A stretch of 64,000 nt of DNA from Heterodontus francisci (Eukaryota). The stretch spans positions 43,533,544 through 43,597,543 of the forward strand of contig NC_090404.1 in assembly GCF_036365525.1 (NCBI RefSeq), given 5' to 3'. Both the position numbers and the translations under genes were made by a program. Position 1 is the first letter of the stretch. Each line of letters starts with the position of its first letter. Below, in pieces: positions 855 to 32,269 of the stretch. Below the pieces are notes generated by a model. The model was not told the DNA's origin. It was given only the letters and a program-made list of their open reading frames with translations, and made no database searches.

Positions 855-910
855 CTCATGGTCTCTCAAGCCGCCCTATGCAAATCAGCCGAGTCTCCAC
901 AGGTTTATAA
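855..910 (+). promoter_or_regulatory. Ig heavy-chain-type promoter: heptamer-like CTCATGG (855-861), octamer ATGCAAAT (878-885), TATA (TTTATAA 904-910)
   Basis: Perfect octamer about 20 bp upstream of a TATA box and about 125 bp upstream of the leader ATG at 1005. Confidence 0.85.
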
Positions 911-1004
911 GGTCGGTGTTCAGACACACACCGTTACACAGAACAGTCAGTGCTGAGGTCTGGAGCTCACTTTGTTTAAATTGTTCCCTGCTGGTGAACA
1001 AACC

Positions 1005-1047
1005 ATGAATATTGTTTGGGTTTCGGTCCTTTTAACCTGGTTACCAA
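1005..1047 (+). CDS. IgNAR: IgNAR leader exon (MNIVWVSVLLTWLP-N)
   Basis: ACCATG start, hydrophobic signal peptide, phase-1 donor A|GTAAGT at 1048, joins the V exon in frame. Confidence 0.93.
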
Positions 1048-1187
1048 GTAAGTGCTGTTTATTAAAGAGATTAAATGTTAATTGCATAAAACTGCGTGGC
1101 TGTGTGACATTGTGGAAATTGTCTTACCTTTAAACTCTTGTATTGTTTCAGACAAGCGATGTACTAAATATATTTTTCTCCATTCAG

Positions 1188-1475
1188 ATGCCTTCACTAC
1201 AAGAGTGGACCAAACACCAAGAACGGCAACGAGAGAGACAGGCGAATCCCTGAGCATTAACTGCGTCCTCACTGATACTAGCCATATTTTGTTCGGCACA
1301 AAATGGTTCTGGAATAATCCGGGTTCAACAGATTGGGAAAGCATAACGATTGGCGGACGATATGTTGAATCAGTCAACAACCAAGCAAAGTCATTTTCTC
1401 TGCAAATCAAGGACCTGACAGTTGAAGACAGTGGCACCTATTACTGCAAAGCGCAAACCATAGGAAGACGCAAAC
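1188..1475 (+). CDS. IgNAR: IgNAR variable segment (VNAR), germline, only canonical Cys (type IV/IIb-like)
   Basis: Acceptor cattcag at 1187. Reads [25 protein letters not shown]...W...[12 protein letters not shown] with C22/W36/C83; only about 60 aa between the Cys (CDR2 deleted). Followed by an RSS. Confidence 0.97.
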
Positions 1476-1513
1476 CACAGTTATGTGTCTGAGCTTTCAC
1501 CAATACAAAAACA
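1476..1513 (+). other. V 3' recombination signal sequence (22-bp spacer)
   Basis: CACAGTT (1476-1482), 22 nt, ACAAAAACA (1505-1513). Confidence 0.93.
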
Positions 1514-1702
1514 TTTTCCAATCTCCAAGGGAAGAAAATACGAATTGTTTCGCTCTTTTCACTGAAACTTAATTTGCAGCATTGATTCTGAGACTGGAGA
1601 TGATTTGCAAATAGCTGGTGACAGACCGCGCAGCAAAGACCCCCAAACGGGACAGTTGGATATGCAGAGCCGCTGTTGAACTTACATTTATGCAAGTAAA
1701 CC

Positions 1703-1785
1703 TGTTTTTGCACTGAGCTGTACCACTGTGTCGATACTTCAGTAACCACAGCAATCGAAGAGCTGGTTCCTGTCATACACAAACT
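1703..1785 (+). other. D1 segment (TCGATACTTCAGTAAC, 1731-1746) with 12/23 RSS
   Basis: TGTTTTTGC-12-CACTGTG | D | CACAGCA-23-ACACAAACT. Confidence 0.92.
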
Positions 1786-1974
1786 ATGAAAACACTATTT
1801 TCATTGGAACAAGGGCAATATTTCTCTGATGCTGAAGTATGAAGAGTAGATACTCAGTATTTTGGAGGGATAACACTCTTCATTCTCAGAAAACCTTGGC
1901 AAAATGTATTATTTCGGGAATCCGGATTGCAGCATGCATCTCGACCTGAGTCACTTGTATTGATGTACATGAGA

Positions 1975-2055
1975 CCTTTTTGCACTGATCTCTGTGACAG
2001 TGTGACTTGGTGAACACCACAGTAATGAATCTTGAATTCCCGCAATACATAAACT
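1975..2055 (+). other. D2 segment (ACTTGGTGAACAC, 2005-2017; possibly from 2003) with 12(14)/22 RSS
   Basis: CCTTTTTGC-14-CAGTGTG (or -12-GACAGTG) | D | CACAGTA-22-ACATAAACT. Confidence 0.85.
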
Positions 2056-2381
2056 GTCCCCACTCTTCTTATTAAGAAGGAAATGCAAATTACCCTCTGA
2101 ATGGCCAAGAAACCTCACGGTTAAATATTCCTTGTCTCTGTCAGACACTGGCTTGTATATTAAAGCCTTTTCTTTATTCATTGAGGTGATTATTTTATAA
2201 TTGTTATCATATATTGATAATAGAGCATTGATGTTTCTCCAGGATTTGTATGAGTGGCTGAGAGTTATAAACGTCTAATGGGATTCCAATATAGAGGCAA
2301 TGATTTAAATCATATTTACTGCATCTTTCAACCAGTACCTTGGAATATCTGAAGGATTTTCTGTGATGTTTGCAACATTGG

Positions 2382-2449
2382 ATTTCTTGTGCTGGTGTGA
2401 AATGATGTGTAGCTGCGATGACACAGTGATTCAGGCAACAGCACAAACC
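2382..2449 (+). other. D3 segment (TAGCTGCGATGA, 2410-2421) with 12/12 RSS
   Basis: ATTTCTTGT-12-TGATGTG | D | CACAGTG-12-GCACAAACC. Confidence 0.88.
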
Positions 2450-2762
2450 TCTCAGACAGTTATTTCCTTGACTATTAGTGAATGTGGCTGCATAATGCGA
2501 TTTCTTCCTCATCGTTGCTACTACACAGAGTTTGAAATCAATTTTAGGTCGACCTTTGTTTGAAATCTATCCTCATTCTCCGATGTTAAATCAGCGGATT
2601 GTTTTTTTCAGAGCTACAGGAGTTTGCATTGCACATAGAAAATAGCTGGATGGATAGCAACTGACAGGAAAATGAAGATTTATTGATCACTAATATATTC
2701 GAATGATCCTTTTGATCGGTGTTACTTTGTTATATTTATTAACGGACATTTGGTTCATTGAC

Positions 2763-2801
2763 CCTTTTTGAACAGGGCTGACTGGGAGCTGACTGACTGT
2801 G
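2763..2801 (-). other. J 5' RSS (23-bp spacer)
   Basis: CCTTTTTGA-23-GACTGTG immediately before J. Confidence 0.9.
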
Positions 2802-2851
2802 TAGCTCCAGTGACTACGACGGAGCTGGCACCGTGCTGACTGTGAACTCTG
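2802..2851 (+). CDS. IgNAR: IgNAR J segment (SSSDYDGAGTVLTVNS)
   Basis: GxGTxLTV motif with D in place of the W/F of WGxG; phase-1 donor G|GTAAGT at 2852. Confidence 0.96.
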
Positions 2852-3974
2852 GTAAGTCACCTCTCTTGCTACTTTATCACTAAAATCTTTTCGATAGAGG
2901 ATTAGAAAATTCAGTGCTCTCGTTCAAAATCGCCTGAACATGAAACGCAATAGCTATAGTTTTTCAACTGACTCGGTTAGGTTAGCTCTCAGTTAATTTG
3001 GCTTAAAATTATAATATATTTTTCAAAAGCGATTTTACCCAAGAATAAATTGAACATGGATTTAATTCTGTAATTTACCTCTCATGTATGACTTTAGGTA
3101 CTGATTTGAATAGATGATGTTAGTTTTAACAGATAAAGCTGACCGAGTCTTCTGAAGTTACTTCCTTACAGAGCTGTCCCTGTATATCCTTAATGTAAAC
3201 TATTTCTGATTCATAAATTAATGCAATTCTGGGGCGAGAGAAATTTTCTCCAAGCAAGGAGTGGATGAAATTGTATAAACTGCTGTTTACGAATTCCGTG
3301 CCGCTTCTAAAAACCTTTTTGTATAAAAGAGTATCTGTTCAGTTAATATCGGCACACAACCTGCAAGTACGAATTCTGACATTTGTGACTCTGGATTAAA
3401 GGCGCACATGTCAGCGACCTAGAAAGTGACCCATTGTCGGGACGAAATTGATCTCATCCTGTCGCGCAAAACGGGGGATAGTGAATGGACAGCCTGTTAA
3501 ACAAGGCGGCAGCTATTTTCACTCATTGACTTGGAAAACGTTGCCAAGGTTTTAATTTCAAACTAAGAAAAGTATCAACGAAACTATCGAGCTTCCAAAA
3601 GAGCTTGAACTGTGAACCACAGTGGAAAGTCTGAGACCTGGTGAAAAACCAACTGCCGATTCACGATGAGCCGCTGTTGCGCTACTGATGTAGACAATTT
3701 CACCCCCGAGACTGTTATTCTGTTGGAATCCTGTGTACATGGAAACCACTTCCCTGGACACCCATGTTTCAGCTAATAGGAGGGCTCTGTGTATAAGACT
3801 ACAGTAGGTTACTGTGTAAAAAGTAGGTTCTCTTTTAAAATATGTGTTTGGAAATGAAATAAGTGGTCTCTTTATTTACTGCTTTAAGGAGAATAGTGAC
3901 GTCTTGATTTACTTACTTATTTTAAATTTGAGGAAGCAGTCTATTTATTTGGAATCTGAGTGCTCCATATTCAT

Positions 3975-4145
3975 GTTGGGCGGTGATGTAAAACGAGTGG
4001 GATCGGATCGGCCGCCCGTTCTATGCAGCGCTTGATATTAAATTCCATTGTCAACAATGGAACTGAATATCAGGCGCCGCCTTTAACAGGCGCCTGATCC
4101 GATAAAGCCTGTTCTGCGCCATCACCTGAGAAGAATTTCTAGCCC
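3975..4145. repeat. Foldback/MITE-like palindromic element in the J-C intron
   Basis: Nested inverted arms: TTCCATTG..CAATGGAA at the centre, GCGCTTGATATT/AATATCAGGCGC, ATCGGATC/GATCCGAT, GGTGATG/CATCACC. Confidence 0.65.
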
Positions 4146-6399
4146 ATTGTATTTGAAGGTGAACAGTGAGATACAGATTAGACTAGAAACATTGCTAAGG
4201 TGCAGCTTTTATCGCAGAGTTAGAACATGTCACTTATCAAAAGGAAAATCTCTCTAAGAAGGCAGGAGAGTGGATGGTGAGAAAAGCCGATTGGGTCCAT
4301 TTCACGCCTCGATACATGATGTTCCACAATGGAATTACCTCCCAAAACAACCGATACCTCCCAGTTTAAATAAAAAGCAAAAAACTGTCAGCTTTCCGAT
4401 GTGATATTCCAGGACCAACCACCTAATTCTGTCCGCTACATTAATTCAGAGGTTAATCTGTTTATTTAAAAGTGGTTGCAGAATACTGAACTTAGGAAAA
4501 TCAAGCGTTAAGCGTGGTTCCCTGAGATGAACAATGGTGATATTTCGAACTAATTTCATTCTTTGCCTCCTCGGCCTGAATACAACAAGTAAAGCAATGG
4601 TATTAATATCTGTCAATGGTATTCACATTCACACTATCATAGGCAAATCATTTTATGTGATCTTCCAACTTGCCCAATGATTAAGAATTTACTACTTGCG
4701 TTGTTGGTGTTGGTCATTTTCCAGCTAATTAATTTGTTTATTTCCACTTTGTCATTTTATTACTTGCTCTTTGATTGTTTTAAAAAGATGTATATATTTT
4801 TCAACCAGTCTTTTGTAAAAGAAAATCACATATGATTGGAGATTTATCGATTTTTCCGTGATTTTATTTTTCGCTGCCAATATTTTCTAGACTCCTGAAC
4901 GAGCCCCGCCCAACTCTGCCTATGTTGTGTGCCTTGAATATTTAAATTATATCTGCTTGTTTGTATATTTCACCCTAACACAGCAGAGCACAAAATCTCT
5001 CTGGCTCACAGCACATATTGTAAATTCCATTGGGTGCTTCGGAATGTTTTGAACATATTTGTTTTACCGATTGCCAAATCCTCGAATTCTGCCGTGATTT
5101 TACTGAACTAGTCCCAGCCTTCCACTGTCCCACAGACCAGTTTGCTCTGTGTCTCACTTTTCTTCATTCAAATGAACGGGAACATCGCACTCCCAGTACC
5201 CGCTTTTCAGTCCATTGAAACTTATGGCGTTGGGATTGTGCAAATTCCAGATCTGTGCTAGAAGTGCATAATCGTAAATCATGCCCCATAGTTAATTTCT
5301 TGGCCACCTGTAACAGACTGATGCAGAATCCATCTTTTCCCATTGATCCAGTTCTGAGGAAAGTTTCACAATTTATTTTCACTTCAACACTTCCTATAGT
5401 TCCAAAATAAGTTTTATTCACAATTTCTTGAAACCCACATTGTTAGAATTCTCAACTATAACAATATTTATTCAGCAATAGTCAAATTATAAACAGATCC
5501 CTCAAATCAGCAATAAGGGCTTTAATTTATGTCGTGACTTTAATTTAATTCGAGACACAGGGTTCAGTACTGAGGGAGGATTTAGAAGTAGGAAAAAGCG
5601 AGATGAAGACAAGTAGAAAAATTTTAAATTGGAAACATAGGGAAGTAATGAATATCAGCGAGGACAGGACTGATGGTTGATTGGAACTTGGTGCAGCTGG
5701 TGACTGTTGGGTAAACTGATGTTTCTGCATTGCAGGAAATAAAGCTGATAAAGGCATGCAGGAAGGGATCAGTTGCAAATTGTCTGTGGTAGTATTGCGG
5801 GCAGGTGATGATAGAGACTGAAGTGGGCGTTCATTGTGTTGAGAGAATAGGGGGTGAAAGGATATGAGGTTCTGGTATGAAGAGGATGTAGAGACTGTGA
5901 ACAGTCTGCTTGTGCCGAAGACAGTGGTCAGGTAGGCCGATAGAACCAGTGGTTAGGTAACAGAGTTAACGACAGGGCCAATTAACAGAGCTAAATCTAA
6001 CCTAAACAGTTTGTTTAATAGTGTGTCACATTTATATTGAGAAGAAACAATCCCAAACTAGCGTAATAAAGAGATTATCAGTTCCAACCTTGCTTTTACA
6101 TTATTCCTAGTATATTCACTGAAACGGTCAGAAGTGACATCAAATTAACACTTTGTAATTTTATAATGTTTTCCTCATTTGACAGAAGATTCTGATTTAC
6201 TGCTGATGAATGAATTAACAATTCATAAATGGCCACTCTTCTCGGTCACGTTTCTCCATATTGGTTCGTTCTGAACCATCCTGTTGTACTATGTATACCT
6301 TGCATCATTGTCTTTGTCGATAACCTGCAAGCTTGCAATGACTGAATGTTAGATGTGAGGATTCCGAAAATCTAACGATTAGTATTGGAGATTAGTTTG

Positions 6400-8430
6400 A
6401 ACAGAAGTAGATATTGGATTGTAATCAAAAATTGGTCGGTAAAACAGTAAGCATAACAGGAAGTCTTCAAAGATGGGATGTTTCGGCAATAGGGTTGGTG
6501 CATTTCCAAGAGAGGCAAGGGAAGAGCATCCAAAGATAGAGCTCCATGAAAGAGTAAAGCTGCAGTGTTAAAATGATACTAAACCGGAAGCTTATGATAA
6601 TTCAGTAGAGAAGCAAGCTGAGTATAGGAAGTGCAGGGAGAACTGAAAAAGGGAATGGAGGTGAAAAGAAAGAGTATAAGATTAACAGCTAAAATAAAAG
6701 GGAACTCAAAAGTCTTTTATAAACTTATGAATAGTAAAATGATTGTCAAATGAAGGGTGGAACTGATTAGGGACCAAAACATATATTTTTGTGGAGTTAG
6801 AGGGCTTGGCTGAGGTACTAAATAAATAATTGCCATTTATCTTTACTAAAAATGAGGATGCTGCCAATGTCATAGCAAATGAGGAGGTAGTAGGGAAAAT
6901 AGGTTAAAATAGATAAAGATGTGATAATTAAAATGTTGGCAAAGCTTCAAGTAAAAAGTCACCTGGACGGAATCCAATGCATCCTAACTTGTTACGGGAA
7001 ATAAGGGTGAGCATAGCCGAGGTTCTGGCCGCAATATTCCATTCCTCCTCAGATATTGGAATGGTCCCATAGGACTGGAGAACATAAAATGTTAGACCTT
7101 TGTCCGAAATGTGAAGAGTTATAAACCCGACGACTGCAGCCAGTCAGCCTAATGTAGGTGATTGAGAAATTTTTAGAGGCAATAATGTGAGGCAAAATAA
7201 ATTGACACTTGGGAAAATAAGGGTTAATAATTGATAGCATCTCAGATTTGTTAAAGACAAATCGTGCTTAACTAATTTGGTTCAGTTCATTGATGGTGTA
7301 TTGGAAAATGTTGATGAGGGTAGTGTGAATGATGTTGATGTAAATTGAAATTCAAAAGTTGTTTTGATAAAGTACCACATAATAGACTTGTTAACAAATT
7401 TTAAGTCCATGGGATTTTGGGGGCAGTGACTGCGTTGGTACGAGATTAGCCAAGAAACACAAAGCGGGGAGTAGTTGTATACAATTATCTTTCGAACTGA
7501 AAACTAGCATACAGTGGTGCCACCCAGCATTATTAATACTACTGCTCTTTTGGATATAAATTAATGACCTGGACTAGAGGATACAGGGCTAATTTCAAAG
7601 TTTGGAGATGACTTGAAACTTGCTATTGTAGAAAACAGTGACGAAAATATAGACTGATTGATCAAAAAGGCAGACACATGGCAGGTACAATTGAATGAAG
7701 AGACGTGTTAAGTGCTGCATTTTGGTAGAAAGAATGAGGAGAGACAATATAAACTAAATGATACAATTTTTAGGGGGTGCAGGAACGGAGAGACCTGGGT
7801 CTGCATGTACACAAATAGTTGAAGGTGGCATTTATCATCAGAGATATAGATTACAAATGCATGGAAGCTATGCTGGATCTTAAAAGTTAATGGTTAGGCC
7901 CCAACTGGAATTATGTGACCATTTTATGAACCGCACTTAAGGAAGGATATTAAACCCTTAGGAAGGGTGCAAAGGAAATTTACAACAATGGAACCAGTGA
8001 TGTTAGTTATGAGGAAGCTTTATTGAAACTGGGATTGTTCCTCTTGGAGCAGGGCATGTTAAGGCAAGATGTAATGGAGATGCTAAAATCCCGAAGTGTT
8101 TTGATAGAATAGTTCCGGACAAACTGTTTTCAGTGGCAGAGACGTCAGGAACACGTGGACACAGAGTGAAGAAAAGGAACTGGAGGAGAGATAGAGAGCT
8201 TTTTATGCATTGAGTTGTTACGATCTGAAATGCACTGCCTGAAAGCCTAGTGGAAGCTGATTCAATTGCAACTTCCAAAGGTAAATTGGATAAAAACGTA
8301 AAGGGAGAAAATTGCAGAGCTGTGGAGGAAAAGCAGGGAGGACTAATTGGACAGTTCCTTCAAAGAGCCAGGCACAGGCACTATCATGGAATAATCTCCT
8401 TCTGTGTTGTATCATTTGGTGTCTCTATGA
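6400..8430 (+). mobile_element. Old degenerate CR1 LINE (ORF2 3' part and tail)
   Basis: Frameshifted RT motifs (KSPG..., FVKDKSCLTNL, INDLD, SKFGDDLK) and a CR1-type 3' end; boundaries approximate. Confidence 0.75.
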
Positions 8431-8459
8431 TTACAGATGCTCTAAGTTTTATAATGTTG

Positions 8460-8950
8460 CTTCTTATCTGGCTGCCAATGGTGGGACGATGGAAATCAGA
8501 GATGGGCAAGAGACCAGGATTGTAGAAGGACAGAGATCGCGGAGGGTTTTAATGTTGGAGAAGGTTTCAGAGACGGTCATGAGAATTTGACCACAAGGAT
8601 GATAATTTTAAATTCGAAGTGTTGTACAACTGGAAGCAAATGTATGTCACTAAGCACAGGAGTGATGCATGAACAGGACTTGGTGCGAGTTAGTATCCAG
8701 GCAACAGAACTTTGGATCAGCTCAATTTTATGGAGGATGAAAGGTGGGGGGCCGGCTTGGAGAGATTGGAATAGGCGAGGCTGCAGATAGGCGGAGGCAG
8801 GGGCGGAGGCAGGAAATCTTACAGATGTGGACGTAAACGGCGTTTGCAGTGATGAGGATATGGGATCAGAAGTTTATCTCAGGGTCAAATCTGACATCCA
8901 GGTTAAGAACAGACTGGTTCCACCTCAGACAGTGACGGCAAAAGACTGAA
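8460..8950 (-). mobile_element. L2-like LINE fragment
   Basis: Similar to the 9395-10400 element (shared gaacaggacttggtg...agagttttggat block). Confidence 0.55.
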
Positions 8951-9020
8951 GTCAGTTCGGGAGCAAGTGAAATTTGGGAACTTTTCATGAGAACAAACTA
9001 TAACAGACATACAAATTATG

Positions 9021-9154
9021 AGAGCAAAATACTGTGGATGCTGGAAATCTGAAATAAAAACAAGAAATGCTGGAAACACTCAGCAGGTCTGGCAGCATCT
9101 GTGGAGACAGAAGCTGAGTTAACGTTTCAGGTCAGTGACTCTTCTTCGGAACCC
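9021..9154 (-). mobile_element. Penelope-like terminal repeat fragment with minimal hammerhead remnant
   Basis: Same repeat as 25673 and 28126. Minus strand reads GGTT-CCGAAGA-AGAGTCACTGACCT-GAAAC-GTT-AACT. Confidence 0.6.
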
Positions 9155-9311
9155 AGTCTTTGGCTGTTGGAGGAAACTGGAACACCCAACTGAAACCCAC
9201 ACGGTCACAGGGAGAACTTGTAAACTCCACCCAGGCAGTACCCAGAACTAAACCCAGGTCGCTGGAGCTGTGAGGCTGCGATGCTAACCATTGCGCTGCT
9301 GCGCCACCCGC
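9155..9311 (-). mobile_element. tRNA-derived SINE (HE1/V-SINE-like), partial
   Basis: Reverse complement matches the 5' part of the SINE at 61326 (tggttagca..gcagcctcacagctccag..ggtactgcctg). Confidence 0.75.
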
Positions 9312-9391
9312 TCTGTTTCAAAAACAATTCCCTGTAAAGTTAAGAAATCAAATTGCTCCATAAGCACACAAATCAAAACAGATGATTGGTA

Positions 9392-10400: not shown

Positions 10401-10606
10401 GGGAAATAATAAAGGATATACATTCAATATCTGACCATCACTGCACCCACATCAAGGGTGAGGATAATTTTGCCCCAGCGCATTGATCATTCTTTATTCA
10501 GAAATTAACAACTTATAAAAATAAATGAACGTTCATTCAATATCTAAACTCCTTTCTCCCAACACGTCCACTGTGATATCCCTACATTTCTTCCCAATTT
10601 CAATAG

Positions 10607-10657
10607 CCACAGCCACACCAACAGAAAATTGCAATGTGATAAACACAGAGGCATTGG
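10607..10657 (+). pseudogene. Candidate hinge mini-exon (ATATPTENCNVINTEAL) with mutated splice donor
   Basis: Polypyrimidine tract plus AG at 10606; 51 nt, phase 1-1, open in the J/C1 frame; followed by ATAAGT instead of GTAAGT. Confidence 0.5.
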
Positions 10658-11034
10658 ATAAGTCGCAATGGCCCCTGGAAACCTCCTTTATCAGACTGGG
10701 GCCTTGGACTTGTCCTATCCCATAATATGTTTTCACGAACAAGCAATCCCTGTATAACACAACTCATAGAACAGCAATATATTGTGATCTTGAATGTAAA
10801 TGGATCAGTGACATTTCAGAAGCAGTATTTTTTTTTTTTAAAGTAATCTCTTATATGCCATCTATTTGTATTAAACTTTGCTCAGGCAGTGCTTGCGAAC
10901 CAATCATATTATCTTAAGAATCAATAGCTGGCCTCTAATTTTGAAAATATTTCACAGCAATACTAAGGAAAATAAAACAAATGACAATTAACCAGAGACC
11001 GTGATTTCAATAAATAAATGAAGATTTGAATTTC

Positions 11035-11205
11035 TATCGGGTCTTTCACGTGCTCAGTACGTCCAAAGGCTTTTTGAAGAGTAGTCACTATTGGAATGTA
11101 TGAAACGTGCACAGCAAGATCCCACAAATAGCAATGTGATAATGACGAGATCATTAGTTTTAGGTGTTGGGTGAAGGATAAATGATGGCCGGGACATGAG
11201 GGAAA
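11035..11205 (-). mobile_element. Deu-domain SINE remnant (AmnSINE1/SacSINE1-like)
   Basis: ttttgaag..tagtcact..gcacagcaagatcccacaaa.agcaatgtgataatgac block recognised from memory of this family. Confidence 0.55.
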
Positions 11206-11254
11206 TGGTCTTTTCATATTTATAGAAGGGAGTAAAATATCCTTGTAATTCTAG

Positions 11255-11569
11255 GACCTGCTCCACCAACCATCAGTCTCCTCTACTCTGCAAGTGACGA
11301 ACAGAGAATAAAGGGGTTGGTACAACTGTTTTGCCTCATCAGTGAATACAAACCAGAAAGCATTACAGTGAGCTGGGAGAAGAATGGAAACTCCATACAG
11401 TCTGGCTTTACCACCACATCCCCAACTAAAACATCGAATGGAGATTTTAGCTCCACAAGCATCCTTAAAGTGCCCCTGCAGGAATGGAGTAGCGGTTCTG
11501 TGTACAGCTGCCAAGTATCCCATTCTGCAACCAACAGTGTACAGCGGAAAGACATTAGATCAAAATCAG
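11255..11569 (+). CDS. IgNAR: IgNAR constant exon C1
   Basis: ctag| acceptor; GPAPPTISLL..LFCLISEYKPESITVSW..YSCQVSHSAT..RSKS (C1-set Ig domain); donor G|GTGAG; 315 nt. Confidence 0.95.
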
Positions 11570-12835: not shown

Positions 12836-12993
12836 CAGTATAAATTATTTTTTCAAATTAGTGATTCACTCAAACTGCACGAAAACAACAGAATGATATT
12901 TTAAATTCAATAATAATCAGTAAAAATATGTTCATCAACTATCAGTTGTCACTGAAATTAAATGCTTCCTAAACAAAGAGATTGGTCAACATA

Positions 12994-13890
12994 AAATTTG
13001 CAGATGACACTAAGGTCGGTGGAGTTGTAGATAGTGCCGAAGGATGTTGGAGGGCACAGAGGGAAATAGATAGGCTGCAGAGCTGGGCTGAGAGATGGCA
13101 AATGGAGTTTAATGCGGAAAAGTGTGAGGTGATTTACTTTGGAAGGAGTAACAGGAATGCAGAGTACTGGGCTAATGGGAAGATTCTTGGTAGTGTAGAT
13201 GAACAGAGAGATCTTGGTGTCCAGGTGCATAAATCCCTGAAGGTTGCTAACCAGGTTAATAGGGCTGTTAAGAAGGCATATGGTGTGTTAGCTTTTATTA
13301 GTAGGGGGGTCGAGTTTCGGAGCCACGAGGTCATGCTGCAGCTGTACAAAACTCTGGTGAGACCGCACCTGGAGTATTGCGTGCAGTTCTGGTCACTGCA
13401 TTATCGGAAGGATGTGGAAGCTATGGAAAGGGTGCAGAGGAGATTTACTAGGATGTTGCCTGGTATGGAGGGAAGGTCTTACGAGGAAAGGCTGAGGGAC
13501 TTGAGGTTGTTTTCGTTGGAGAGAAGGAGGAGGAGAGGTGACTTAATAGAGACATATAAGATAATCAGAGGGTTAGATAGGGTGGATAGTGAGCGTCTTT
13601 TTCCTCGGATGGTGATGGCAAACACGAGGGGACATAGCTTCAAGTTGAGGGGTGATAGATATAGGACAGATGTGAGAGGTAGTTTCTTTACTCAGAGAGT
13701 AGTAAGGGCGTGGAACGCCCTGCCTGCAGCAGTAGTAGATTCGCCAACTTTAAGGGCATTTAAGTGGCCATTGGATAGGCATATGGATGAAAATGGAATA
13801 GTGTAGGTCAGATGGTTTCACAGGTCGGCGCAACATCGAGGGCCGAAGGGCCTGTACTGCGCTGTAATGTTCTAAATTCTAAATTCTAAA
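12994..13890 (+). mobile_element. Young 5'-truncated CR1 LINE in the C1-C2 intron
   Basis: Open RT C-terminal ORF (KFADDTK...), (TTCTAAA)3 tail; nearly identical to 35789-36688. Confidence 0.95.
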
Positions 13891-13925
13891 CGCATTGTCC
13901 TGTTTCTGTATCTCTGGTTTCTCAG

Positions 13926-14234
13926 TGACAGAAATCACAGTATTTCTCAGAGATCCCTCCATTGAAGACATCTGGATCAATAAGACTGCCACCCTGGTGT
14001 GTGAAGTGGTCTCTACAGATCCCACTGAGATTGCGATCTCTTGGACAGTTGATGGTAAGATGAGGATTGAAGGAGTTCAAATCGAAGCAATTACAAAGGA
14101 TGGAAACCAGTACCTGACAATCAGCCGCTTGACAAGCAGCGTGGAAGAATGGGATAGCGGGGTTGAATACTCATGCTTAGCACATGGGGACCAATCATCA
14201 AATCCGGTAACAAAACAAACAAGAAGGACAAAAG
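13926..14234 (+). CDS. IgNAR: IgNAR constant exon C2 (alternative in-frame start at 13932)
   Basis: (VT)EITVFLRDPSIEDIWINKTATLVC..SW..EYSC..RRTK; donor G|GTGGGT. Confidence 0.93.
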
Positions 14235-14309: not shown

Positions 14310-14627
14310 TCGAGCCAATACAGCCAAAGGTCCGCCTCCTGCCTCCATCACCAGAGGAGATTCAAAATACCAGCACCGCCATTCTCACATGCTTGATAAG
14401 AGGATTCTATCCTGATAAAATCACCGTTTCCTGGGAGAAGGACGGAGTTGCTTTAAACTCGAACGTCACCAGTTTCCCCACTGCTCTTGAACAGGACCAG
14501 AGCTTCAGCACAAGCAGCCTTCTCATTTTACCTGCAGCTGAATGGAAAAAGGGAGAAACATACACCTGTTCCGCCTTACATTCACCTTCAGACTCGACCG
14601 TGAAGAGGGCCATCAGCAAACCGAAAG
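14310..14627 (+). CDS. IgNAR: IgNAR constant exon C3
   Basis: Preceded by a 75-nt intron with branch point GACTAAC (14281). Reads VEPIQPKVRLLPPSPEEI..LTCLIRGFYPDKITVSW..YTC..SKPK; donor G|GTAAGG. Confidence 0.95.
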
Positions 14628-18755: not shown

Positions 18756-19076
18756 ATGATTGTCATGAGGCAGACATTTCTGTCAATATATTGAACCCCC
18801 GCTTTGAAGAGATTTGGACTCAACGAACGGCGACCATTGTTTGTGAAATCCTTTACAGCGACTTAGAAAGCGTCATCGTGTCCTGGCAAGTGGATGGGAG
18901 TGGGAAAACGGAAGGAGTCGAGACTCAGAGTCCCGAGTGGAATGGAAGCAAATTCGCCATCGTTAGTAAACTGAAAGTCACTGCGGCAGAGTGGGACAGT
19001 GGGGTGGAATACGTCTGCTTCATAGAGGACAGCGAATTACCAACACCAGTGAAAACTTCCACCAGGAAAGTAAAGG
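18756..19076 (+). CDS. IgNAR: IgNAR constant exon C4 (extra N-terminal Cys, DDCHE)
   Basis: tcaag| acceptor; DDCHEADISVNILNPRFEEIW..IVC..SW..EYVC..RKVK; donor G|GTAAGC. Confidence 0.95.
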
Positions 19077-19474: not shown

Positions 19475-19857
19475 TTGGTGAAATGCATCCTCCTAAAGTC
19501 TACGTTCTACTTCCATCAGCGGAAGAGATAGACACTGAGCAGACGGCTACTCTGGTGTGTCTGGTCACTGGATTTTATCCTGCTGAGATTTACATCGCTT
19601 GGATGGCCAATGACACCCTTTTGGATTCAGGTTCTCCTAGCCAAGCAGAGATCGAGAAGAGAAATGATTCCAGCTCCATTGCCAGCAGATTGAAACTCAC
19701 TGCGGTGGAGTGGAACAGCGGCACCACTTACACCTGTTTAGTGGGACACCCGTCCCTCCAAAGGGATTTACGCAGAAGCATAAATAAATCTTATGGTAAA
19801 CCTACTTCAGTTAATGTTTCACTTGTCCTATCTGACAGTGTTAAATCATGTACATAA
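19475..19857 (+). CDS. IgNAR: IgNAR constant exon C5 plus secretory tail (internal donor after 19795 for the TM form)
   Basis: VGEMHPPKVYVLLPS..LVC..YTCLVGHPSL..NKSY|GKPTSVNVSLVLSDSVKSCT*. IgM-like tailpiece with NVS sequon and penultimate Cys; G|GTAAAC internal donor. Confidence 0.96.
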
Positions 19858-20173: not shown

Positions 20174-20229
20174 AATAAATGTAGAATGAAAACCTGCTGG
20201 CTCCCCTATTTGTCGTTTGTGTGCGTGTT
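20174..20229 (+). terminator. Secretory-form polyadenylation signal
   Basis: AATAAA (20174-20179) followed by GU-rich ttgtcgtttgtgtgcgtgtt. Confidence 0.75.
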
Positions 20230-22184: not shown

Positions 22185-23410
22185 TGTATGAGTGGCGGAA
22201 CCACTGTTCAGATGTGTAGTATCGGTCTAAGAAGGAGGCTGTCTCGCTGATTTGGGAACCGCTGTTCTATGGGTTGTGGTTAAGTCGCCATGTTGGAGGC
22301 TGCCTGATTGAGTGGAAGAACCGCTGTTCTTTGAGGTCCAGCGTCTCTCCACTCTGGAGAATGTCTCGGTGAAGGGGGGGCCGGCGGTAGGGTGGGGGGA
22401 GCGCTGTTCTATGAGATGTGGTAACTATCCATGCAGGCGTGTGCCTCAGTGAGTGAGGCAACCGTTGTTCGATGAGATGTGGTATCTCTCCTTCCTGGAG
22501 TGTGTCTTAGTGAGTGGGGGAACGTCTGTTCAATGGAATGTGGTAACTATCCATGCTGGAGGGTGTCACGGTGAGTGAGGGATCACTTGTTCCTTGGCGT
22601 GTGGTATTTCTCCCTGCTGTAGGATATTTTGACGACTGGGGGAACTACTGTTCTATGAGGTTTGTTATGTATCCATGCTGGAGTATGTCTCAGTGAGTGA
22701 AGCAACTGATGTTTGATGGGGGATGGTATCCATCTATGCTAAAGAATGATTCAGTGAGTGGGGAAACCACTGTCCTATAGGGTGCGGTGTCTCTCTCTCT
22801 CTCTCTGTTGAAGGGTGTCTCAGTGAGTGGGATAATCCATGTTCTATACCTATTCATGCTGGAGGGTGTGGTGGTGAGTGGGATAATCCATGCTATATGG
22901 GATGCGATATCTATCCATGTTGGAGGATGGCCCTTTGAGTGGGGGAGTCTCTGTACAGTGGGGGGCGATATCTATCTGTGCAGGAAGACGTCTCGATGAG
23001 TAGGGGAGCCGATATTCTATGGGCTGAATTTCTGTCCATGTTAGAGTGTGTCTTAGTGAGTGGGAGACCTCTGGTCTCTGGGATGCGGTATCTATCCGTG
23101 CTGAAGATGTCTTGGTGAATAGGGAAACATCTGGAATGTGTCTCAGTGCGTGGATTCGCCGCTTTTCTACGGGGTCTGGTATCTATCCAACTGGAGGATG
23201 CTTCTGTGAGTAGAGGAATCTATGTGCTATGGGTTGTGGTATCTATCCTTGAAGGAAAATGTCTCGTTGAGTGGAGGAACAGCTGTTCAATGGGGAGTTA
23301 TGTCTCGCCACGCTGGAGGGTGTCTCAGTGAGTGGAGGATGCGCTGTTCTATGGGGTGAAGTATCTACCACGCTGGAGGTTGCCTCGGTGAGGTGGTGAG
23401 CAGTGTATCT
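22185..23410 (+). repeat. Degenerate 61-bp G/T-rich tandem repeat (~20 copies)
   Basis: Unit approx. AGTGAGTGGGGGAACCGCTGTTCTATGGGGTGTGGTATCTATCCATGCTGGAGGGTGTCTC; unit starts at 22509, 22570, 22692, 22753. Confidence 0.85.
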
Positions 23411-24099
23411 TACTCTGCCATCGATGCATGATGGATGCTGTTCATTCAGCTTGTGGTCAGATGCACTAATTTAGTCAGCAAATTGGTATCTGTGTTTCTC
23501 ATGATGCCAATTTGTGAGTGGACCCCGCTTCATTCATCAGAGTTGGTTCACGTCCGGTTGTACAGTGTTAACAGGCTGTGTTTCACTTTGTTATCAAGCT
23601 ATCTCTGGGTCACCTAATCCCACAATATCTCATCAGCTAAGGAAGTGCATATGGACACGTATAACCAACCCATGTTCAGCTCTCGCTTTCACATTGTAAA
23701 ATTAGGAGGAATTTGCTTAGGGTGTTGAATTTATCCCCTAGTCAGCTGTTGTTAAGAAGATATGACCTGTCTGTTCAATCTAGAATAAAACTTCAGACTG
23801 TAACCCAGGATTTGAGATCTTTGAATTTATAAAATGACAACATTTACTCTATGTCAGGTCAGTGATTCCTGTGGTTATGATAATTTTGGACTCAGGCTCC
23901 AACTGTCTGAACGTAATGCAAATATAAAGGTCCCCCTCTAATCACTACAAATATCCCCCCCTCCCCACTAACTCCCCCCACAGCCACACACCCCTCACCC
24001 CCCACCCACCACACACACAAAGAAGCCTCGGCTAGGATTACCATAACCTCTTACTACATAAGCCAAGACTTGACTTGAAATACACTGCTGTTCAATAAA

Positions 24100-25330
24100 T
24101 GATATTAGATAAGTCCAGCAACAACAGGCTAGTCATTTTAACTGTAATGGTGGGAATGCTTTTTAGAAACGCTGATCCAGGACAGAATTAACAGTCACTT
24201 GGACAAATGTGGAATATTTAAGGAAAGACAGCAAGGATTTGTTAAGGGGAAATCGTGTTTGACTAACTTGATTGAGTTTTTGATGAGGTAGCAGAGAGGG
24301 TTGATGAAGGTAATGCATCTGATGTGATGTATATAGAATTCCAAAAGGCGTTTCTTAAAATGCTACATTAGATGCTTTTCCACAAAGTTGAAACCCATGG
24401 AATAATAGGGATAGTGGTAGCATGGATACAAAGTTGGCTGAATTATAGGAATCAGAGAATAGTGGTGAATGGTTCGTTTTCAGATTGTAAGAGCATATAA
24501 AGTGAAGTTCTCCAGGGGGTCAGTACTAGGACCACTGCTTTACTTGATAGATATTAATGACCATGACTATGGTATGCCGGACACAATCTTAAAATTTGCG
24601 AATGAGACAAAACTGGGCAATATTGTGAATTGTAAGAAAGATGGTGATAGACTTCAACAGCGAATAGACAGCCTATTGTAATGGGCGGAGAAGTGGCAGA
24701 TTAAACATAATTCAGAGATGTGAAGTGATAAATTTTGCTTGGAAAAACGAGGAAAGCCAATGGAAACTAAAGGGTAAAATTCTAAAGGGGATGCAGGATG
24801 AGAGAGACCTGGGGGTATACGTGCACAATTCGTTGAAGGTGGCAGAGCAGGTTGAGAAAGTGCATAAAGAAAGGCAGACGGGATCCTCGGCCTTATAAAT
24901 AAAGGCACAGAGTATGAAAGAAAGGAAGTTATGGTGAACCTTTATAAAACACTGTTTCGATCTCAATTGGAGTATTGCGCCAAATTCTGGGCACCACAGT
25001 TTAGGAAGGAAGTGAAGACATTAGAAAAGATGTGGAAAACATTTATGAGAATGGTTCCAGAGAGGCAAAACCTTTTTTATGCAGCGAGTGGTTATGATCT
25101 GGTATGTATTCCCTGAGAGTGTGGTGGAAACACATTCAATCCAAAAGGATTCAAAACTGTCCTCACAATTGGATAAGCACCGGAAGAGAAAAAGGAAATG
25201 CAGTGCTATAGGAACAAGCAGGGGAGTGGGACTAGGTGAGTTGCTCTGGCAGCGATCCAGCATGGATACTGCAGTCTGAATGATCTCCTTCAGTGCTGCA
25301 AGGATTCTATGATTTGATGGTTCTATGATT
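24100..25330 (+). mobile_element. Degenerate CR1 LINE 3' fragment
   Basis: GSVLGPLL, INDHD, KFANETK, LEYCAKFWAP motifs and a TTCTATGA-type tail. Confidence 0.85.
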
Positions 25331-25672
25331 GTCAGTAGTAGGGAATTGTTAACTTCAGTTTTATCGCTGAATCCAAGACAGAAAGCATAAAGTAAGCAGA
25401 CATTTTGTGTTTCTGTTCCAGAATATTGGAGACATCTTATAGGAATATACGATATGATGTGCTATTGATTCCACAATACAATACCAGCCGAGTAAATAGA
25501 TAATTGTAACAGTAATATATCAAATCTTGAGTATGAAACCTAAGAGTATGGCAGCACCAGCCTGGTAAATAACAACTAAATCTATTAACAGTGAGGTGGG
25601 TCTAACCTTATTGTGCAGATGGTAATGTAAAATAATGAATTGAAATCCGAAAACAGAACTTGTCTTTATCTA

Positions 25673-26035
25673 AAATAAAAGCATAATATTGTAGATGCTG
25701 GAAATCTGAAATAAAAACAGAAAGTGCTGGAAATACTCAACAGGTTAGACAGTATCTGTGGAGACAGAAGCAGAGTTAAAGTTTCAGGTCAGTGACCTTT
25801 CATCAAAACTGGCAAAGGTTAGAAAAGAATTATGTTTTAACTGAGTGAAGGAGGGGGTGGGGAGGGTATGGTGGTGGGGTAGTGGGGAAGAGAACAAAAG
25901 GAAAGGTCTGTGAAAGGGCAGAGGGCAGGAGAGGTTAAATAACAAAGCTGTCCTGGGATATAGGCAGAGTGTGTTAATGCTTGTAATTAAAGACGAAGCA
26001 TCAGTGTGGAGAGAGTGTGAACGGCAGAAAAAATG
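25673..26035 (-). mobile_element. Penelope-like fragment with minimal hammerhead remnant (25774-25810)
   Basis: Minus strand AGTT-TTGATGA-AAGGTCACTGACCT-GAAAC-TTT-AACT; same repeat as 9021. Confidence 0.6.
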
Positions 26036-26643
26036 AAGCTTGTCTGTATCTACTTTGCTGCAAAATGTTGATAGATTTCAGCTTTCGAGCATAAACTGCG
26101 CTGATCAGGCAAAGATGCATCTTAAGCCAAAATATCAGCCCGCTTCAGTTTTCCTGCTGATTTTGGAACTGAATTTCGCATGTGAACTGCAAGGGATTTA
26201 ATTCTATAATCAGGACACACTTCTGTTCAAAAGTTGCCGAGTTTATTTCTTTTAAGTAGATTTTCATTAATTATTGTCATTATCAGCTGCCAAAAGACAA
26301 ATTAATTTTAATCACACGCTCTTATCAGTGTCATAAAGCATTTTTTCCCTACTGGAACATGAAAAGCATGGATATATAACGTCTTTAATCAATCCTCTCT
26401 CCTGTATACTCTGCCTGACCTCTACTATCACCACACAATACATGCCTTTCTCCATTGTTCAGAAATTCACTTTAACGGGCATCGGGCTGGTTGACATTTG
26501 AGCTACTTTCTCATATACAGTCATTCAGCTTCTGATGCATTATTTACCTCGTGGTTACCGGTTTTCAGGTTAGTTCAGTTCTTTGTATGTATTCTGTTTT
26601 CACCATGAACACATTTATACCAATATCCATCTATTTATTCTAG

Positions 26644-26801
26644 AAACTCCTCAAATAATGGAAAATCCAGAAGACCTCGAGGTAGAGGAAGAAAGATTAG
26701 AAAATTTCGATGAGGATGCAAACTCTGCTGCAACAGTGATCGCTTTTGTCATCCTGTTTATCCTCAGTGTATTGTACAGCACATTTGCAACCGTCCTTAA
26801 G
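26644..26801 (+). CDS. IgNAR: IgNAR transmembrane exon TM1
   Basis: ctag| acceptor in phase 1; acidic spacer ETPQIMENPEDLEVEEERLENFDEDANS then TM ATVIAFVILFILSVLYSTFATVLK with the conserved YS motif; phase-0 donor AAG|GTAATA. Confidence 0.93.
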
Positions 26802-27714
26802 GTAATAACAAATTTCAATAGCACTGTGACATTGTGCAAATTGACTAGGAAGTTGGGTTTATACCTTGGATGTAGCTAAGGTGAAAATAATGAACTAAAT
26901 ATTCCAAAAGAATAATAATTCCTCCTGTCCCACAGTATAAGATTGGACTTCATCAGTCCTTTCCATGTGATTAACTGGCACATTTACTAAACTTCCTGAA
27001 TAAGATGACTTGGCCGAGGAATACATGCAGACGAGAATTAATATAACATATAGGAAGCAGCAGACATCAATAATGGAAAGAATTACTTTACAAGTAGATT
27101 GTCGGTCATTAGAAGCAAAACAACAGGAAAAATATTTACTAAATGTTTATGAGTAACAAGCCAGAAATAGTTAGCGAACCATCCCGAGAATAATGAACAT
27201 AATAGTTTTGAGACAGAGAGAGAGAAAGGATGACCACAAGCAAAGGTTTGCAAGTAAAGCTGGATCACCATGAAGAGAGGTGGAAAGCATTGATTTCAGA
27301 ATGATGGGATGTTGATAACTGTGAAGTGATGAAGAAAGCATTGACCATGGAAGGCAGGAGAAAATTGCAGTTGTTAAATCGATGAAAAAACGGTGCAATT
27401 TATTCAAGAAGTTGATCAGCGAACACAAAATACTCAATCACAGAAAGAGAAATTCTGAATGGGGGATCACATTACCTTGAAAGACAACAATTCGTGCCAG
27501 TATCAAACCAAAATATGGAAGGTTAAGGCATAAAGATTGTCAGGTTTGACAGCCGGCAGCATTATAAAACCAGCAAAAAAAAGATATAATGAAATTATAA
27601 AATGCAATGTGTGGTAGGAAACAATTGCTGGGGATGTGAAGGATGATATCAAATGTTTTATAGTTACATAAAGAAAAATGAGTAAGTTAAAAGTGCATGT
27701 GAGGTTGTTACACA

Positions 27715-29290
27715 GGAACATGGGAAACATTGGCCATGGAAGGATAGGAGAAAATTGCAGCAGTTAAATCGACGAACCTGCTCCGCAACTGAGTTAGATA
27801 ATGGCTGGTCCGTATCTTAACTAGATACATACAACTTCGTTGCATGTCTTTTAATAATCTTACCTAACATAAAGGTATCAACCTTGGGTTTTGAATTTTT
27901 TTAAATTGGCTCCCAACCTCAACAGCTTTTAGGGAAAATAATTCCAGATTTCCACTACCATTTGTTTGAAGAAATATTTCCTGGCATTATCCCCGAACGG
28001 TCTCACGCTAATTTTAATATTATTCCTGCCTTGTTCTGGACTCCCTCATCAGAGGATAGAATTTCTCTCTATGTAGTATGTAGCCGAATAAATTCTTCAG
28101 TCATACTCAACAGCTCAATGAGATGAAAGCAAAATACTGCAGATGCTGGAAATCTGAAATAAAAACAAGAAATGCTGGTAATACTCCGCAGGTCTGGCAG
28201 CTTCTGTGGAGAGAGCAGCAGAGAGAAGCTTCTCTCTCTACAGATGCTGCCAGACCCGCTGAGTATTTCTAGCATTCCTTGTTCTTAGCTCAAATAGATG
28301 ACCACTTAATCTTTTCTATTTCAGAAAACACAATCCGAATCTATGCAACCTGTCCTCATAATTGCAATGCTTTCAGCCCCAGTACGGACAATCAATGCTG
28401 CACCCTCTTCAAAACCAATATATCTCTCCTGAGGGTCTGTGCCCATAACTGAGTGTAATAATTATAGAGTTATAGAGTCATTTACAGCAGAGAAGGAGAC
28501 CATTCAGCCTATTGAGCCAATGCCGGTTCTCCATGGATCTATGTGTCCCACTTCCCAGCTCAATCCCCATAGCCCTGTAAGACTATTTCTCTCAGGTGGC
28601 CATCTAACTTCTTCTTGAAGTCATGGATCATCTCCCCTTTCACCACCCTCTGAGCAGCAAGTTCTACTTCATTACCACCCGCTGCGTTAAAAATTATATA
28701 TTCCCCTGCATCGTTTGCCAAAAACTGTCTCCCCATCTGTGTCAGAGCTTTATACAAATACAGAAGAACTTCCACCCCTTTGAATTCCAGCCCCCTTGAG
28801 ATAGAAGCCAACACTCTATTACCTTTTTAATCATTGTTCATACCTGTCCGCAAGTATGTCGTGATTTCTACAATTGGATGCCTACATTTCTCTGCTCCTC
28901 CACAATTCCCAGATTCTCATCATGTTTGAAAAATCTGGTCTGTCTTCCTCAACTCCAAACTAAATGCCTCACACTTCCCCACACGGAATTTCATTTACCA
29001 CTGTTTTGGCTAATCATTTAATCCACTGAAGTCCCTTTGCAATGTCCTGTTCCCATCTACACTATTTACCGCTCTACTTAGTGTCGTTAGTAAACTTGGA
29101 TCTCCTGCTCTCTTTTCATCTACATCGTTGATAAATATACTGAAAAACTGATCGACCCGTACAGATCCCCTAGGAACTTCACTTGTCACATTCTTCAAAT
29201 GGAACATATTCCTGTTATCAACTACTCTTTGTCTCTGACATCGTCACCAATTCCCTACCTAAATCAATAGGTTACATTCAATTCTATGCG
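27715..29290 (-). mobile_element. Degenerate CR1 fragments (interrupted by the Penelope-like foldback)
   Basis: Minus-strand CR1 motifs (SEVPRGSV..FINDVDE; RGLEFK..LYKAL; LQGYGD). Confidence 0.65.
28126..28287. mobile_element. Penelope-like repeat in inverted (foldback) configuration
   Basis: Arms aacaagaaatgctgg..ggtctggcagc.tctgtggagagag and ctctctacagatgctgccagacc..agcattccttgtt. Confidence 0.7.
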
Positions 29291-30640
29291 GCCTCAATTG
29301 CATTTAAAATAGAGTGTGGGTCCACATCAGTGGAGGATAAGGACAATGATAAACAACAACAAAAGTAACATTTTGCTACTGCCTTCAAAAACAAATGGAC
29401 CATATGTTATCTAAACTGCTTGGAGCATTATAGTGTAGGATTTATAGCATTCTAGGAGATTGCTTTTCATGGAAAAAGAACATGATCAAAGTCAAACTAT
29501 TAGAATTGGAACCAGTCAGAACCTCCTGATGAAGACAGGATTCATACTAGCTCATTGCCCAATTAATCCTGCCCTCTTAAATTGAGGCTTAACTCGTAGA
29601 TTACATTTGGGTTTAACTCTGTGGAAAGCCATTGCAGTGACACTACTTTTGACAGAGAGTCAGAAAATGCACCTAAAACTAAACAAGCTGCAATTCATCA
29701 AAATGTAAACAATTAAAGTAAAATGTGAATGATAGCGTGTCTTTTCTTTCTTTTTCTGTCTCCCTCTCTCTATACATGCATCTACCTAACTCTATTTCTT
29801 ACATACGCAAACGTATAGAATTCCCATGGCATTACAGAAGGAAAATCGAGAGTAAGTGTTGTCTTCATGGGTAGAGAGTTGGAGATAATTAGACAAGGGT
29901 GCGAGACTGTAATTCAGTTCCTCTTCCAATGTCAGTCATTCTGCCCTTAATTTCCTACTGTCATCATCAATTCTTCATTCCTTATTTCAAATATAGAGTG
30001 TAAATCTGCATTATCACGCTGTCTTTACACATATCAGCCATTAATAATACTACAATGCCTTTGAGCATCTCTCCAGTCCTTTGATCGCACTACAGGGAAC
30101 GTTCTTTACTTCAACCAACTGCACTTTTCTACTCCCGCAATTCCGGCATGTTTTACAATTTAGCTGTCATATCGCTCATTTTAATTCAAAGTATTATCTA
30201 AAACATAGGACATGGTACATAACATTAAGTCGGAAATGCATACACTTACTCACCACGTGAGAACAATACCTCTAAACACTTCACCGGAAGGCTTGGAAAC
30301 TTAGAGACGATACTAGATTCGTTCTGAGTTCCGCAACAATTCACATGAACAGCTGTATTTTACTGGAAGTTGTATCTATGTATGACAGGTAACAAATGAT
30401 TCCCTTGTAATTTAAACACTCACGGAGATACACGACTAGTGAGGTTTTCAGGACTCAGGGCTTGTGGTCAATCATTTTTAGAGGGTAGCTGTGAAAGTTC
30501 AGAAATATCCTCCCATTTCACAACAGTAGCCAATCATTTTGCTTTCGGTTGCATGCTTTTGACTATTCAGTGTAATTACACCTTAGCTGTCTCACTCTGG
30601 TACTCACTGGTTTAACATTCTGTTTTTTTTTTCACTGCAG

Positions 30641-30649
30641 GTGCACTAG
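30641..30649 (+). CDS. IgNAR: IgNAR TM2 exon coding part (V-H-stop; cytoplasmic tail KVH)
   Basis: Strong T-rich acceptor ttttttttttcactgcag|GTG CAC TAG, phase 0, the usual Ig TM2 layout. Confidence 0.8.
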   Translation: MH

Positions 30650-32223
30650 CGGCTGCTTTGCCAGAAGGCACTTCCGGTTTGTATTCAAGGCTTGTGTGGG
30701 AACTTTCATCAGATGCTGAGGACAGACAGGACTGAATTGCTTCACTTTCTCACTGTTATTGTCTGCTCCACTGCACCACTTCATCTTATATTGTCTCAGC
30801 CAAACCATGAAAACTGTTTGCTTCATTTTCTACCAATACCTCATGCCTTAACTCTTGCTTCATTATGCAGTAGTGTTAAATAGAATTCCTCATAACTGCA
30901 ACAAACCAGTGAACTGGGAAAATCCCGCAGATTCAATTAAACTAAACTGAGGAGAAATTATTATTATGTGTTAGCAGCATCTTGAAATAGTGGGAGTGTT
31001 TCCTCTGTCTGTTATTAGCTAAATATGTGATCACGATGTCACTGGGAATAGTAAACAGATAAACGTTCCTACCACGTTTGTGAGCTTGTAGACACACTGC
31101 CATGGGTGCAGATCTTCCCCGTTAATCTTGGATTGCACTGTACAGAGGGTCCAGGGATTCCCTATGGGCAAGAACAAAAAACGCATTGAAATAATCCGAA
31201 AATCACGTGGTTGTACAGATTGCAAACAAAATCTGTAGAAAGAGTAAGAATTGCTCTGGTCGCTGTTTGCATTGATAACCCAGCTGTATTTGTGAAAATT
31301 TCCTCTGCTCAGCATTTCTTGCGGAATCAGGAAGCGATCGTAGCTGAATGTGGTAATGATTTTGTTACTGATCCATAACAGAGGAAATCTCCAAGAGTAT
31401 CTTTACGTTCTCTCTACATATGGCGCACAGAGGAGCACAGTGGTACATCGTCCTTTACCAATGTAAAACAAGGAAGATCTGCATTGATTTCTGACATAGT
31501 CTCAGAGCCTTATATCCATGTAGAACCCCAATGGAAACTAAAGAACACCGTGACTGCCCTTTAACACATGTCAGGAAAAGTGTTGTAAATCTGATGCCTT
31601 TTTTCAACCCATGGTTAAGAATTCCTCAGGAGGTTTGTTCCCGCGAGATCATATCTGCCTGCAAATCAATGTCTCTGAGGCCCTATTTCTGACATTTTAA
31701 GAAATGGTCCATTCACGATCTGCCAAGACATACTAAGCAGGGACAACCAACATCAGAGCCTGTACAACGTCACTACCCAGAGCTAAAAGATGGAGTCTCC
31801 CTTCTATAATAATTCAGATAAAAATCCTGGATTACCTTGATTATCTCCAGAATTGCTACATAAATTGAATGAAAATGCGATTTTAGAATCCATTTTGTTT
31901 TTAATGTAATATAGGGACATAAGGAACAGGAATAGGCCATTCAGTAACTTGCGCCTGCTCAGCCATCCAATTAGATCATGGCTGATCTGTCCCCGAACTC
32001 CATTGCCTTGCCTTGGTTTAAGATCCTTTGGTACCTTTCCTGACAGTATTTGCACCGGTTTGCTGAATTGAATTTTAAGAAATAATGGGGACTTGTGTCT
32101 AATTCCTAATTTTTTGGAAATTGAATGGTCTTATGCTAATTTTATGCTCATATTTGAATGTTACTACTGTGTTATCGTTCATTCATTACTTTTCGACTCT
32201 GTAAATGCAAAGCTTTAGAATAT

Positions 32224-32269
32224 AATAAAATACATTGCTGCATTCTGTTATTCAATTTTTTTAAATAAA
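32224..32269 (+). terminator. Probable membrane-form poly(A) signals
   Basis: AATAAA at 32224 and 32264, about 1.6 kb after the TM2 stop; an ATTAAA at 30935 is an alternative. Confidence 0.5.

Follow-up and report, generated by a model that had tools for sequence, protein, structure and literature searches.

This study focused on a stretch of 64,000 nucleotides (nt) of Heterodontus francisci contig NC_090404.1 (the window), in which positions 878-30649 of the forward strand very probably represent a complete germline, unrearranged heavy-chain cluster of the elasmobranch immunoglobulin (Ig) class IgNAR, intact and transcribed. The initial annotation, made from the letters alone, had proposed a promoter, a single variable (V), three diversity (D) and one joining (J) segment, five C1-set constant (C) exons, a secretory tail and transmembrane (TM) exons, and all of these were located on the + strand (Table 1), the second TM exon as a candidate only. 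It had also described the exons as in frame with canonical splice sites, and indeed all exons share phase 1, lie between AG and GT borders and contain no stop codon.

Class and organisation of the cluster

The sequence identifies the class of the cluster as IgNAR. The best 30 PDB matches of the V exon were all shark VNARs (3e-37 to 4e-24), followed by a VNAR-containing construct, 8y0y (1e-14), and by conventional V domains from about 6e-11. Against a large protein collection, 16 of 16 matches were VNAR or unnamed, the best identities being 76% (an unnamed entry) and 71% (Squalus acanthias E06). In the exon translation, the two canonical Cys (Cys25 and Cys86, its only Cys) enclose exactly 60 residues, and the translation aligned over its full length and without gaps to VNAR structures. 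It is a V domain without the C'-C'' strands (complementarity-determining region 2, CDR2), which agrees with the earlier estimate of about 60 residues and no CDR2. In the constant region, C1 to C4 each matched their own nurse-shark IgNAR domain (4q97, 4q9b, 4q9c and 2mkl, 138-159 bits); this single-domain matching covers C1-C4, a solved IgNAR counterpart of C5 being absent. Multi-domain human antibodies sometimes ranked above the IgNAR domains, because the scores of several domains sum. Within the cluster, C2 was closest to C4 and C3 closest to C5, a resemblance that fits the published two-exon duplication common to IgNAR and IgW (PMC12227049). The overall arrangement is that published for IgNAR clusters, V-3D-J-5C-Sec-Tm (PMC8692893, PMC5192425).

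The J segment reads YDGAGTVLTVNS, with YDGAG in place of the WGxG of VH, as had been noted before. The interface Trp of that motif is absent, and the segment fits the IgNAR pattern (Y/D)G(A/G)GT..TVN. Exon C1 has two intradomain Cys only. The absence of an extra Cys from C1, of the WGxG Trp from J, and of CDR2 from V all appear compatible with a chain that has no light-chain partner.

An assignment to some other class with related exons, either IgW, with its homologous C-terminal domains, or NAR-TCR (TCR, T-cell receptor), with its NAR-type V, deserves consideration since IgNAR C domains are known relatives of those of IgW (PMC5192425, PMC12227049). Both classes are excluded by the combination of a VNAR-type V, whose Cys spacing is not that of VH, with the domain-by-domain matches of C1-C4. 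A NAR-TCR is further contradicted by what lies after J (five C1-set exons of Ig, then a secretory tail and a first TM exon of Ig type), by RNA that joins J straight to C1, and by the absence of any TCR delta V or C from the window. For IgW, there are five C exons with no sixth within the window, and the V lacks the conventional VH form. A protein search for the closest class, which had been suggested as a check with the spliced protein and was run here exon by exon, returned IgNAR rather than IgW, IgM or TCR for V and C1-C4. As far as sequence allows, the IgW or NAR-TCR assignment appears already refuted, and its probability is negligible.

The recombination signal sequences (RSSs) are ordered V-23, 12-D1-23, 12-D2-23, 12-D3-12 and 23-J, with 22-nt spacers counted as 23-type. 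Joining of RSSs follows the established 12/23 rule, and given this order neighbouring segments should therefore be able to join, with direct V-to-J joining forbidden. For the one V, three D and one J of the cluster, the RSSs permit four joins. The 5' border of D3 is ambiguous, lying either at 2410 (a 12-nt D3, 2410-2421) or at 2392 (a 30-nt D3, 2392-2421); the segment may reach to 2392 because its 5' RSS is degenerate. Expressed inserts in CDR3 matched at most GTAGCTGCGATGA, and the short version is therefore favoured.

Downstream of the C1-set domain, C5 continues into a secretory tail with an NVS N-glycosylation site and a Cys two residues before its end, features that have also been described for other shark Ig tails (PMC8692893). 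A second secretory-tail exon was sought between C3 and C4, where nothing tail-like was found. Exon C4 begins with DDCHE (18756-18764), giving it an N-terminal Cys outside the intradomain pair, and since the constant region has no extra Cys besides this one and that of the tail, the two are predicted to form inter-chain bonds. No Pfam model matched the first TM exon (TM1), but its hydrophobic stretch shows an LFxLSxxYST pattern that we take to be typical of Ig membrane exons. The candidate for TM2 was chosen as a short V-initial open reading frame (ORF) behind an AG between TM1 and 33500. For an alternative at 28596 (VAI*), the acceptor is weaker and the adjoining sequence derives from a long interspersed nuclear element (LINE), and the candidate at 30641 was preferred. 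An internal TM donor lies inside C5 (G|GTAAAC after 19795). TM1 could be joined in frame from this donor as well as from that of C3, so the membrane form may be long or short.

Judged by what is known of the family, the RAG recombinase of developing B cells would join the V, D1, D2, D3 and J segments of the cluster to one another, the up to four junctions concentrating diversity in CDR3, and the VDJ exon would then be spliced onto C1 to C5. If the transcript is polyadenylated behind the C5 tail, the chain would be secreted and carry a Cys close to its tail end, and splicing of the C5 internal donor or the C3 donor to TM1 and TM2 would yield the receptor form. With the tail, the internal donor and TM1 intact, both forms may be made.

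Table 1. Coordinates of the cluster features in the window
Feature	Position	Strand	Evidence or remark
Ig octamer of V promoter, ATGCAAAT	878-885	+	exact match
TATA-like box, TTTATAAG	904-911	+	read directly in the sequence; upstream of leader
Leader exon, MNIVWVSVLLTWLP, phase 1 donor	1005-1047	+	splice 1047>1188 (GT..AG) in 4/4 RNA runs
V exon, VNAR type	1188-1475	+	Pfam V-set 6.9e-11; top PDB match 4hgk, 3e-37
V tail specific to this cluster: ATAGGAAGACG (11 nt) flanked by two CAAACC copies (1454, 1471)	1454-1476	+	paralogous transcript lacks exactly 17 nt
V RSS: CACAGTT, 22-nt spacer, ACAAAAACA (23-type)	1476-1513	+	score 14/16
D1 5' RSS: nonamer TGTTTTTGC, 12-nt spacer, heptamer CACTGTG	1703-1730	+	
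D1, TCGATACTTCAGTAAC	1731-1746	+	RSS on both sides; 8-nt match in one expressed CDR3 insert
D1 3' RSS: CACAGCA, 23-nt spacer, ACACAAACT	1747-1785	+	
D2 5' RSS: CCTTTTTGC, 12-nt spacer, GACAGTG	1975-2002	+	
D2, TGACTTGGTGAACAC	2003-2017	+	RSS on both sides
D2 3' RSS: CACAGTA, 22-nt spacer, ACATAAACT	2018-2055	+	
D3 core, TAGCTGCGATGA, one frame SCD	2410-2421	+	10- and 13-nt matches in expressed CDR3 inserts
D3 3' RSS: CACAGTG, 12-nt spacer, GCACAAACC	2422-2449	+	strong, score 14/16
J 5' RSS: CCTTTTTGA, 23-nt spacer, GACTGTG	2763-2801	+	
J segment, SSSDYDGAGTVLTVNS, phase 1 donor G|gtaagt	2802-2851	+	
C1 exon	11255-11569	+	Pfam C1-set 2.4e-21; 4q97, 147 bits, residues 1-104
C2 exon	13926-14234	+	Pfam C1-set; 4q9b (Novel antigen receptor), 138 bits
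C3 exon, phase 1 donor	14310-14627	+	Pfam C1-set 1e-23; 4q9c, 155 bits
C4 exon	18756-19076	+	Pfam C1-set; 2mkl, 159 bits, 72/101 residues identical
C5 exon with secretory tail, GKPTSVNVSLVLSDSVKSCT*	19475-19857	+	Pfam C1-set 5.1e-22
AATAAA, likely polyadenylation signal of secretory mRNA	20174-20179	+	317 nt past stop codon; predicted
TM1 exon: acidic spacer, then SAATVIAFVILFILSVLYSTFATVLK	26644-26801	+	AG/GT borders, frame
Candidate TM2 exon, GTG CAC TAG (VH*)	30641-30649	+	best polypyrimidine tract and AG

Transcription, rearrangement and paralogous clusters

Four sequencing runs (X1-X4) from one sample, recorded as 'RNA?' and in the form of contigs, were compared with the cluster. Contig depth was zero at 600-796, began in the 797-993 bin and was very high over V and J, and in the J-C intron it lay 100 to 1000 times below that of V and J; the window includes only about 850 nt upstream of the promoter. 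Given this profile, and the removal of the 140-nt leader-V intron in all four runs, the data behave as RNA. Past the J donor (2852), contig letters matched only position 11256 onward, that is, the start of C1. A candidate Cys-containing hinge mini-exon at 10585-10663 showed no sign of use in the contigs listed, which join J (2851) directly to C1 (11255). More than 15 distinct V-to-J joints were recovered, with diverse inserts of 18-40 nt, some of which carry D1 and D3 letters, and these look like rearranged CDR3s. Unrearranged transcripts were represented as well: contigs at least 99% identical to the window cover V-D1-D2 (1432-1982) and D2-D3-J (2119-2717), and also the J-C intron, and a spliced leader-V contig of a paralog continues through its own RSS into the V-D1 spacer. 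In this sample the V promoter therefore drives transcription of IgNAR clusters that are still unrearranged. Mapping of the kind that had been proposed as a check on exon joins and VDJ junctions has recovered leader-V and J-C1 splices and V-to-J joints, and the claim that the cluster is functional gains support at the RNA level from spliced, rearranged transcripts, including joints with its own V tail, with the qualification that most expression is paralogous.

The contribution of this particular cluster can be judged from letters that distinguish it from its paralogs. The diagnostic V positions are 1254, 1340 and 1381-1383, at which this cluster has G, A and CCA; the majority letters there replace S22 by T, S51 by R and N64-Q65 by K-G, all of them residues of dogfish VNARs. 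Its tail at 1460-1475 is diagnostic too. A spliced contig that is not rearranged departs from the window at 24 sites and has 17 nt missing from the end of V (gap at 1453). Most joints run from V positions 1454-1459 to J positions 2813-2815, where the paralog letters start. Joints that exit V at 1468, 1474 or 1475, found in X1, X2 and X3, keep the tail of this cluster and enter its own J letters at 2805/2806. In some of the contigs that contain J, 2812 is followed by an additional ACT, representing a paralog J one codon longer (SSSDYYDGAG-like), and this provides a further cluster marker.

Several observations weigh against an intact cluster that contributes to the repertoire. The other letters make up 92% or more of the contig depth at the diagnostic V sites (100% in X3 and X4), and most expression must therefore come from paralogs. 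The material is a single sample in the form of contigs, from which levels are not measurable; the tail-bearing joints were taken irrespective of reading frame, and could be supplied by a near-identical allele or duplicate. The 5' RSS of D3 offers two weak candidates, each with 4/7 heptamer and 6/9 nonamer positions matched, and TM2, of two codons, and both polyadenylation sites are predictions.

These points could be combined into a picture of an intact bystander that gives germline transcripts and is rarely or never productive, the tail-bearing rearrangements coming from a near-identical allele or duplicate. Such a bystander would account for the small minority of own letters at every diagnostic V position and their absence in X3 and X4, for the germline transcripts over V-D1-D2 and D2-D3-J, for the other letter read in all runs at positions 1716, 1938, 2332-2338, 2455, 2467 and 2685 of the V-D-J interval, for the weak D3 signal, and for V replacements at positions that are constant in eight other aligned VNARs. 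However, no stop, frameshift or damaged splice site was found anywhere in the cluster, joints that keep its tail (1468-1475) reach its own J letters at 2805-2806 where paralog joints reach 2813-2815, and its own D1 and D3 letters occur in CDR3 inserts. Nor does the absence of its letters from X3 and X4 prove anything, because contigs lose rare variants. We regard a mere bystander as quite unlikely; the cluster is probably minor but used, beside dominant paralogous IgNAR clusters of the same genome.

The germline V end

Two traits appear to be distinctive of this cluster: a V end longer by 17 nt, and V replacements at framework sites where the other VNARs compared do not vary. Before the heptamer, the V end reads TGC AAA GCG CAA ACC ATA GGA AGA CGC AAA C, with a tail that includes TIGRRK. 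The 17-nt difference arose either here, by a small insertion of duplication type, or in the paralog, by a deletion at microhomology, and a search of the window for a template or second copy of the 11-nt insert found none. It is rather unlikely that the cluster, whose V 3' end is 17 nt longer and directly abuts the RSS heptamer, defines a distinct VNAR germline subtype; if it did, a basic CDR3 stem (TIGRRK) would be hard-wired into every antibody from the cluster. On that reading, the insert could record a germline event at the border between V and RSS, in a lineage whose germ cells are known for RAG activity.

Comparison with known systems, and surroundings

Nurse-shark VNAR types I and II are defined by non-canonical Cys, and the V described here, having none in CDR1 or the frameworks, is therefore neither type I nor type II. 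With the IgNAR of the nurse shark (Ginglymostoma cirratum; Greenberg et al. 1995) the cluster shares the domain-by-domain matches of C1-C4, with 72/101 residues identical in C4, together with the J motif DGAGTVLTVN and a Cys near the end of the secretory tail, but its V is 55-60% identical and its germline V end is longer. The IgNAR clusters of the white-spotted bamboo shark likewise consist of V, three D, J, five C, Sec and Tm, with RSS spacers of 12, 22 and 23 nt, a conserved Cys in the secretory tail, and several clusters per genome that are unequally expressed (PMC8692893). They differ in that D segments are pre-joined in three of the bamboo shark clusters, whereas all three are separate here, and in that the short Tm form V-C1-C2-C3-Tm has been demonstrated there by rapid amplification of cDNA ends (PMC8692893) and is frame-compatible only in the present cluster.

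The closest named V is found among spiny dogfish (Squalus acanthias) VNARs, such as E06 in 4hgk (3e-37; 71% identity by BLASTP). They share the V start sequence, and some members also have only the two canonical Cys. Where the present V has SLSINC, WFWNNPG, DWES and VNNQAK, dogfish VNARs have SLTINC, W(Y/F)RKNPG, (DWER/NKEQ) and VNKG(A/T)K, and the majority transcripts of the sample are dogfish-like at the three decoded sites (T22, R51 and K64-G65). Shark IgW/IgD resembles the cluster in being organised as clusters, in its C1-set exons and homologous C-terminal domains, and in its C2/C3 exon-pair duplication; its conventional VH that pairs with light chains, and the six C domains of its long form, have no counterpart here. 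Camelid VHH has the same function, a single V domain that binds antigen without a light chain, but it is of independent origin, being a modified VH with CDR2 in a translocon locus, with CH1 lost by splicing.

When every exon was compared with the whole window by tblastn, nothing was found outside the cluster at E <0.1, which bears out the statement that no further Ig segments occur in the next 32 kb; the interval of 32-64 kb is LINE debris. The C1-C2 intron contains the 3' end of a LINE (12982-13806, the C-terminal part of the reverse-transcriptase ORF), which is 95-97% identical to a fuller copy at 35789-36600, 22.8 kb downstream, and the LINE family is therefore young. Dense LINE fragments on both strands (RVT_1, endonuclease) fill 34235-59600, along with a GDSL/OSK-like esterase ORF (57353-57799), and no cellular gene was recognised in that interval. 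A tandem array with a 61/122-nt unit and matches of 69-78% lies in the C5-TM1 intron (22395-22730 and 23260-23392). An Rfam scan of the window returned no family.

The cluster is a textbook example of its kind, and existing knowledge of IgNAR is unchanged by it. Its longer germline V end, which would pre-set the base of CDR3, is the one feature that might be new. What it provides for the species is a base-accurate annotation of an IgNAR cluster, including promoter, RSSs, D segments, splice borders and tail, and a set of diagnostic V letters that separate this cluster from its paralogs, both of them useful for repertoire analysis and for VNAR libraries.

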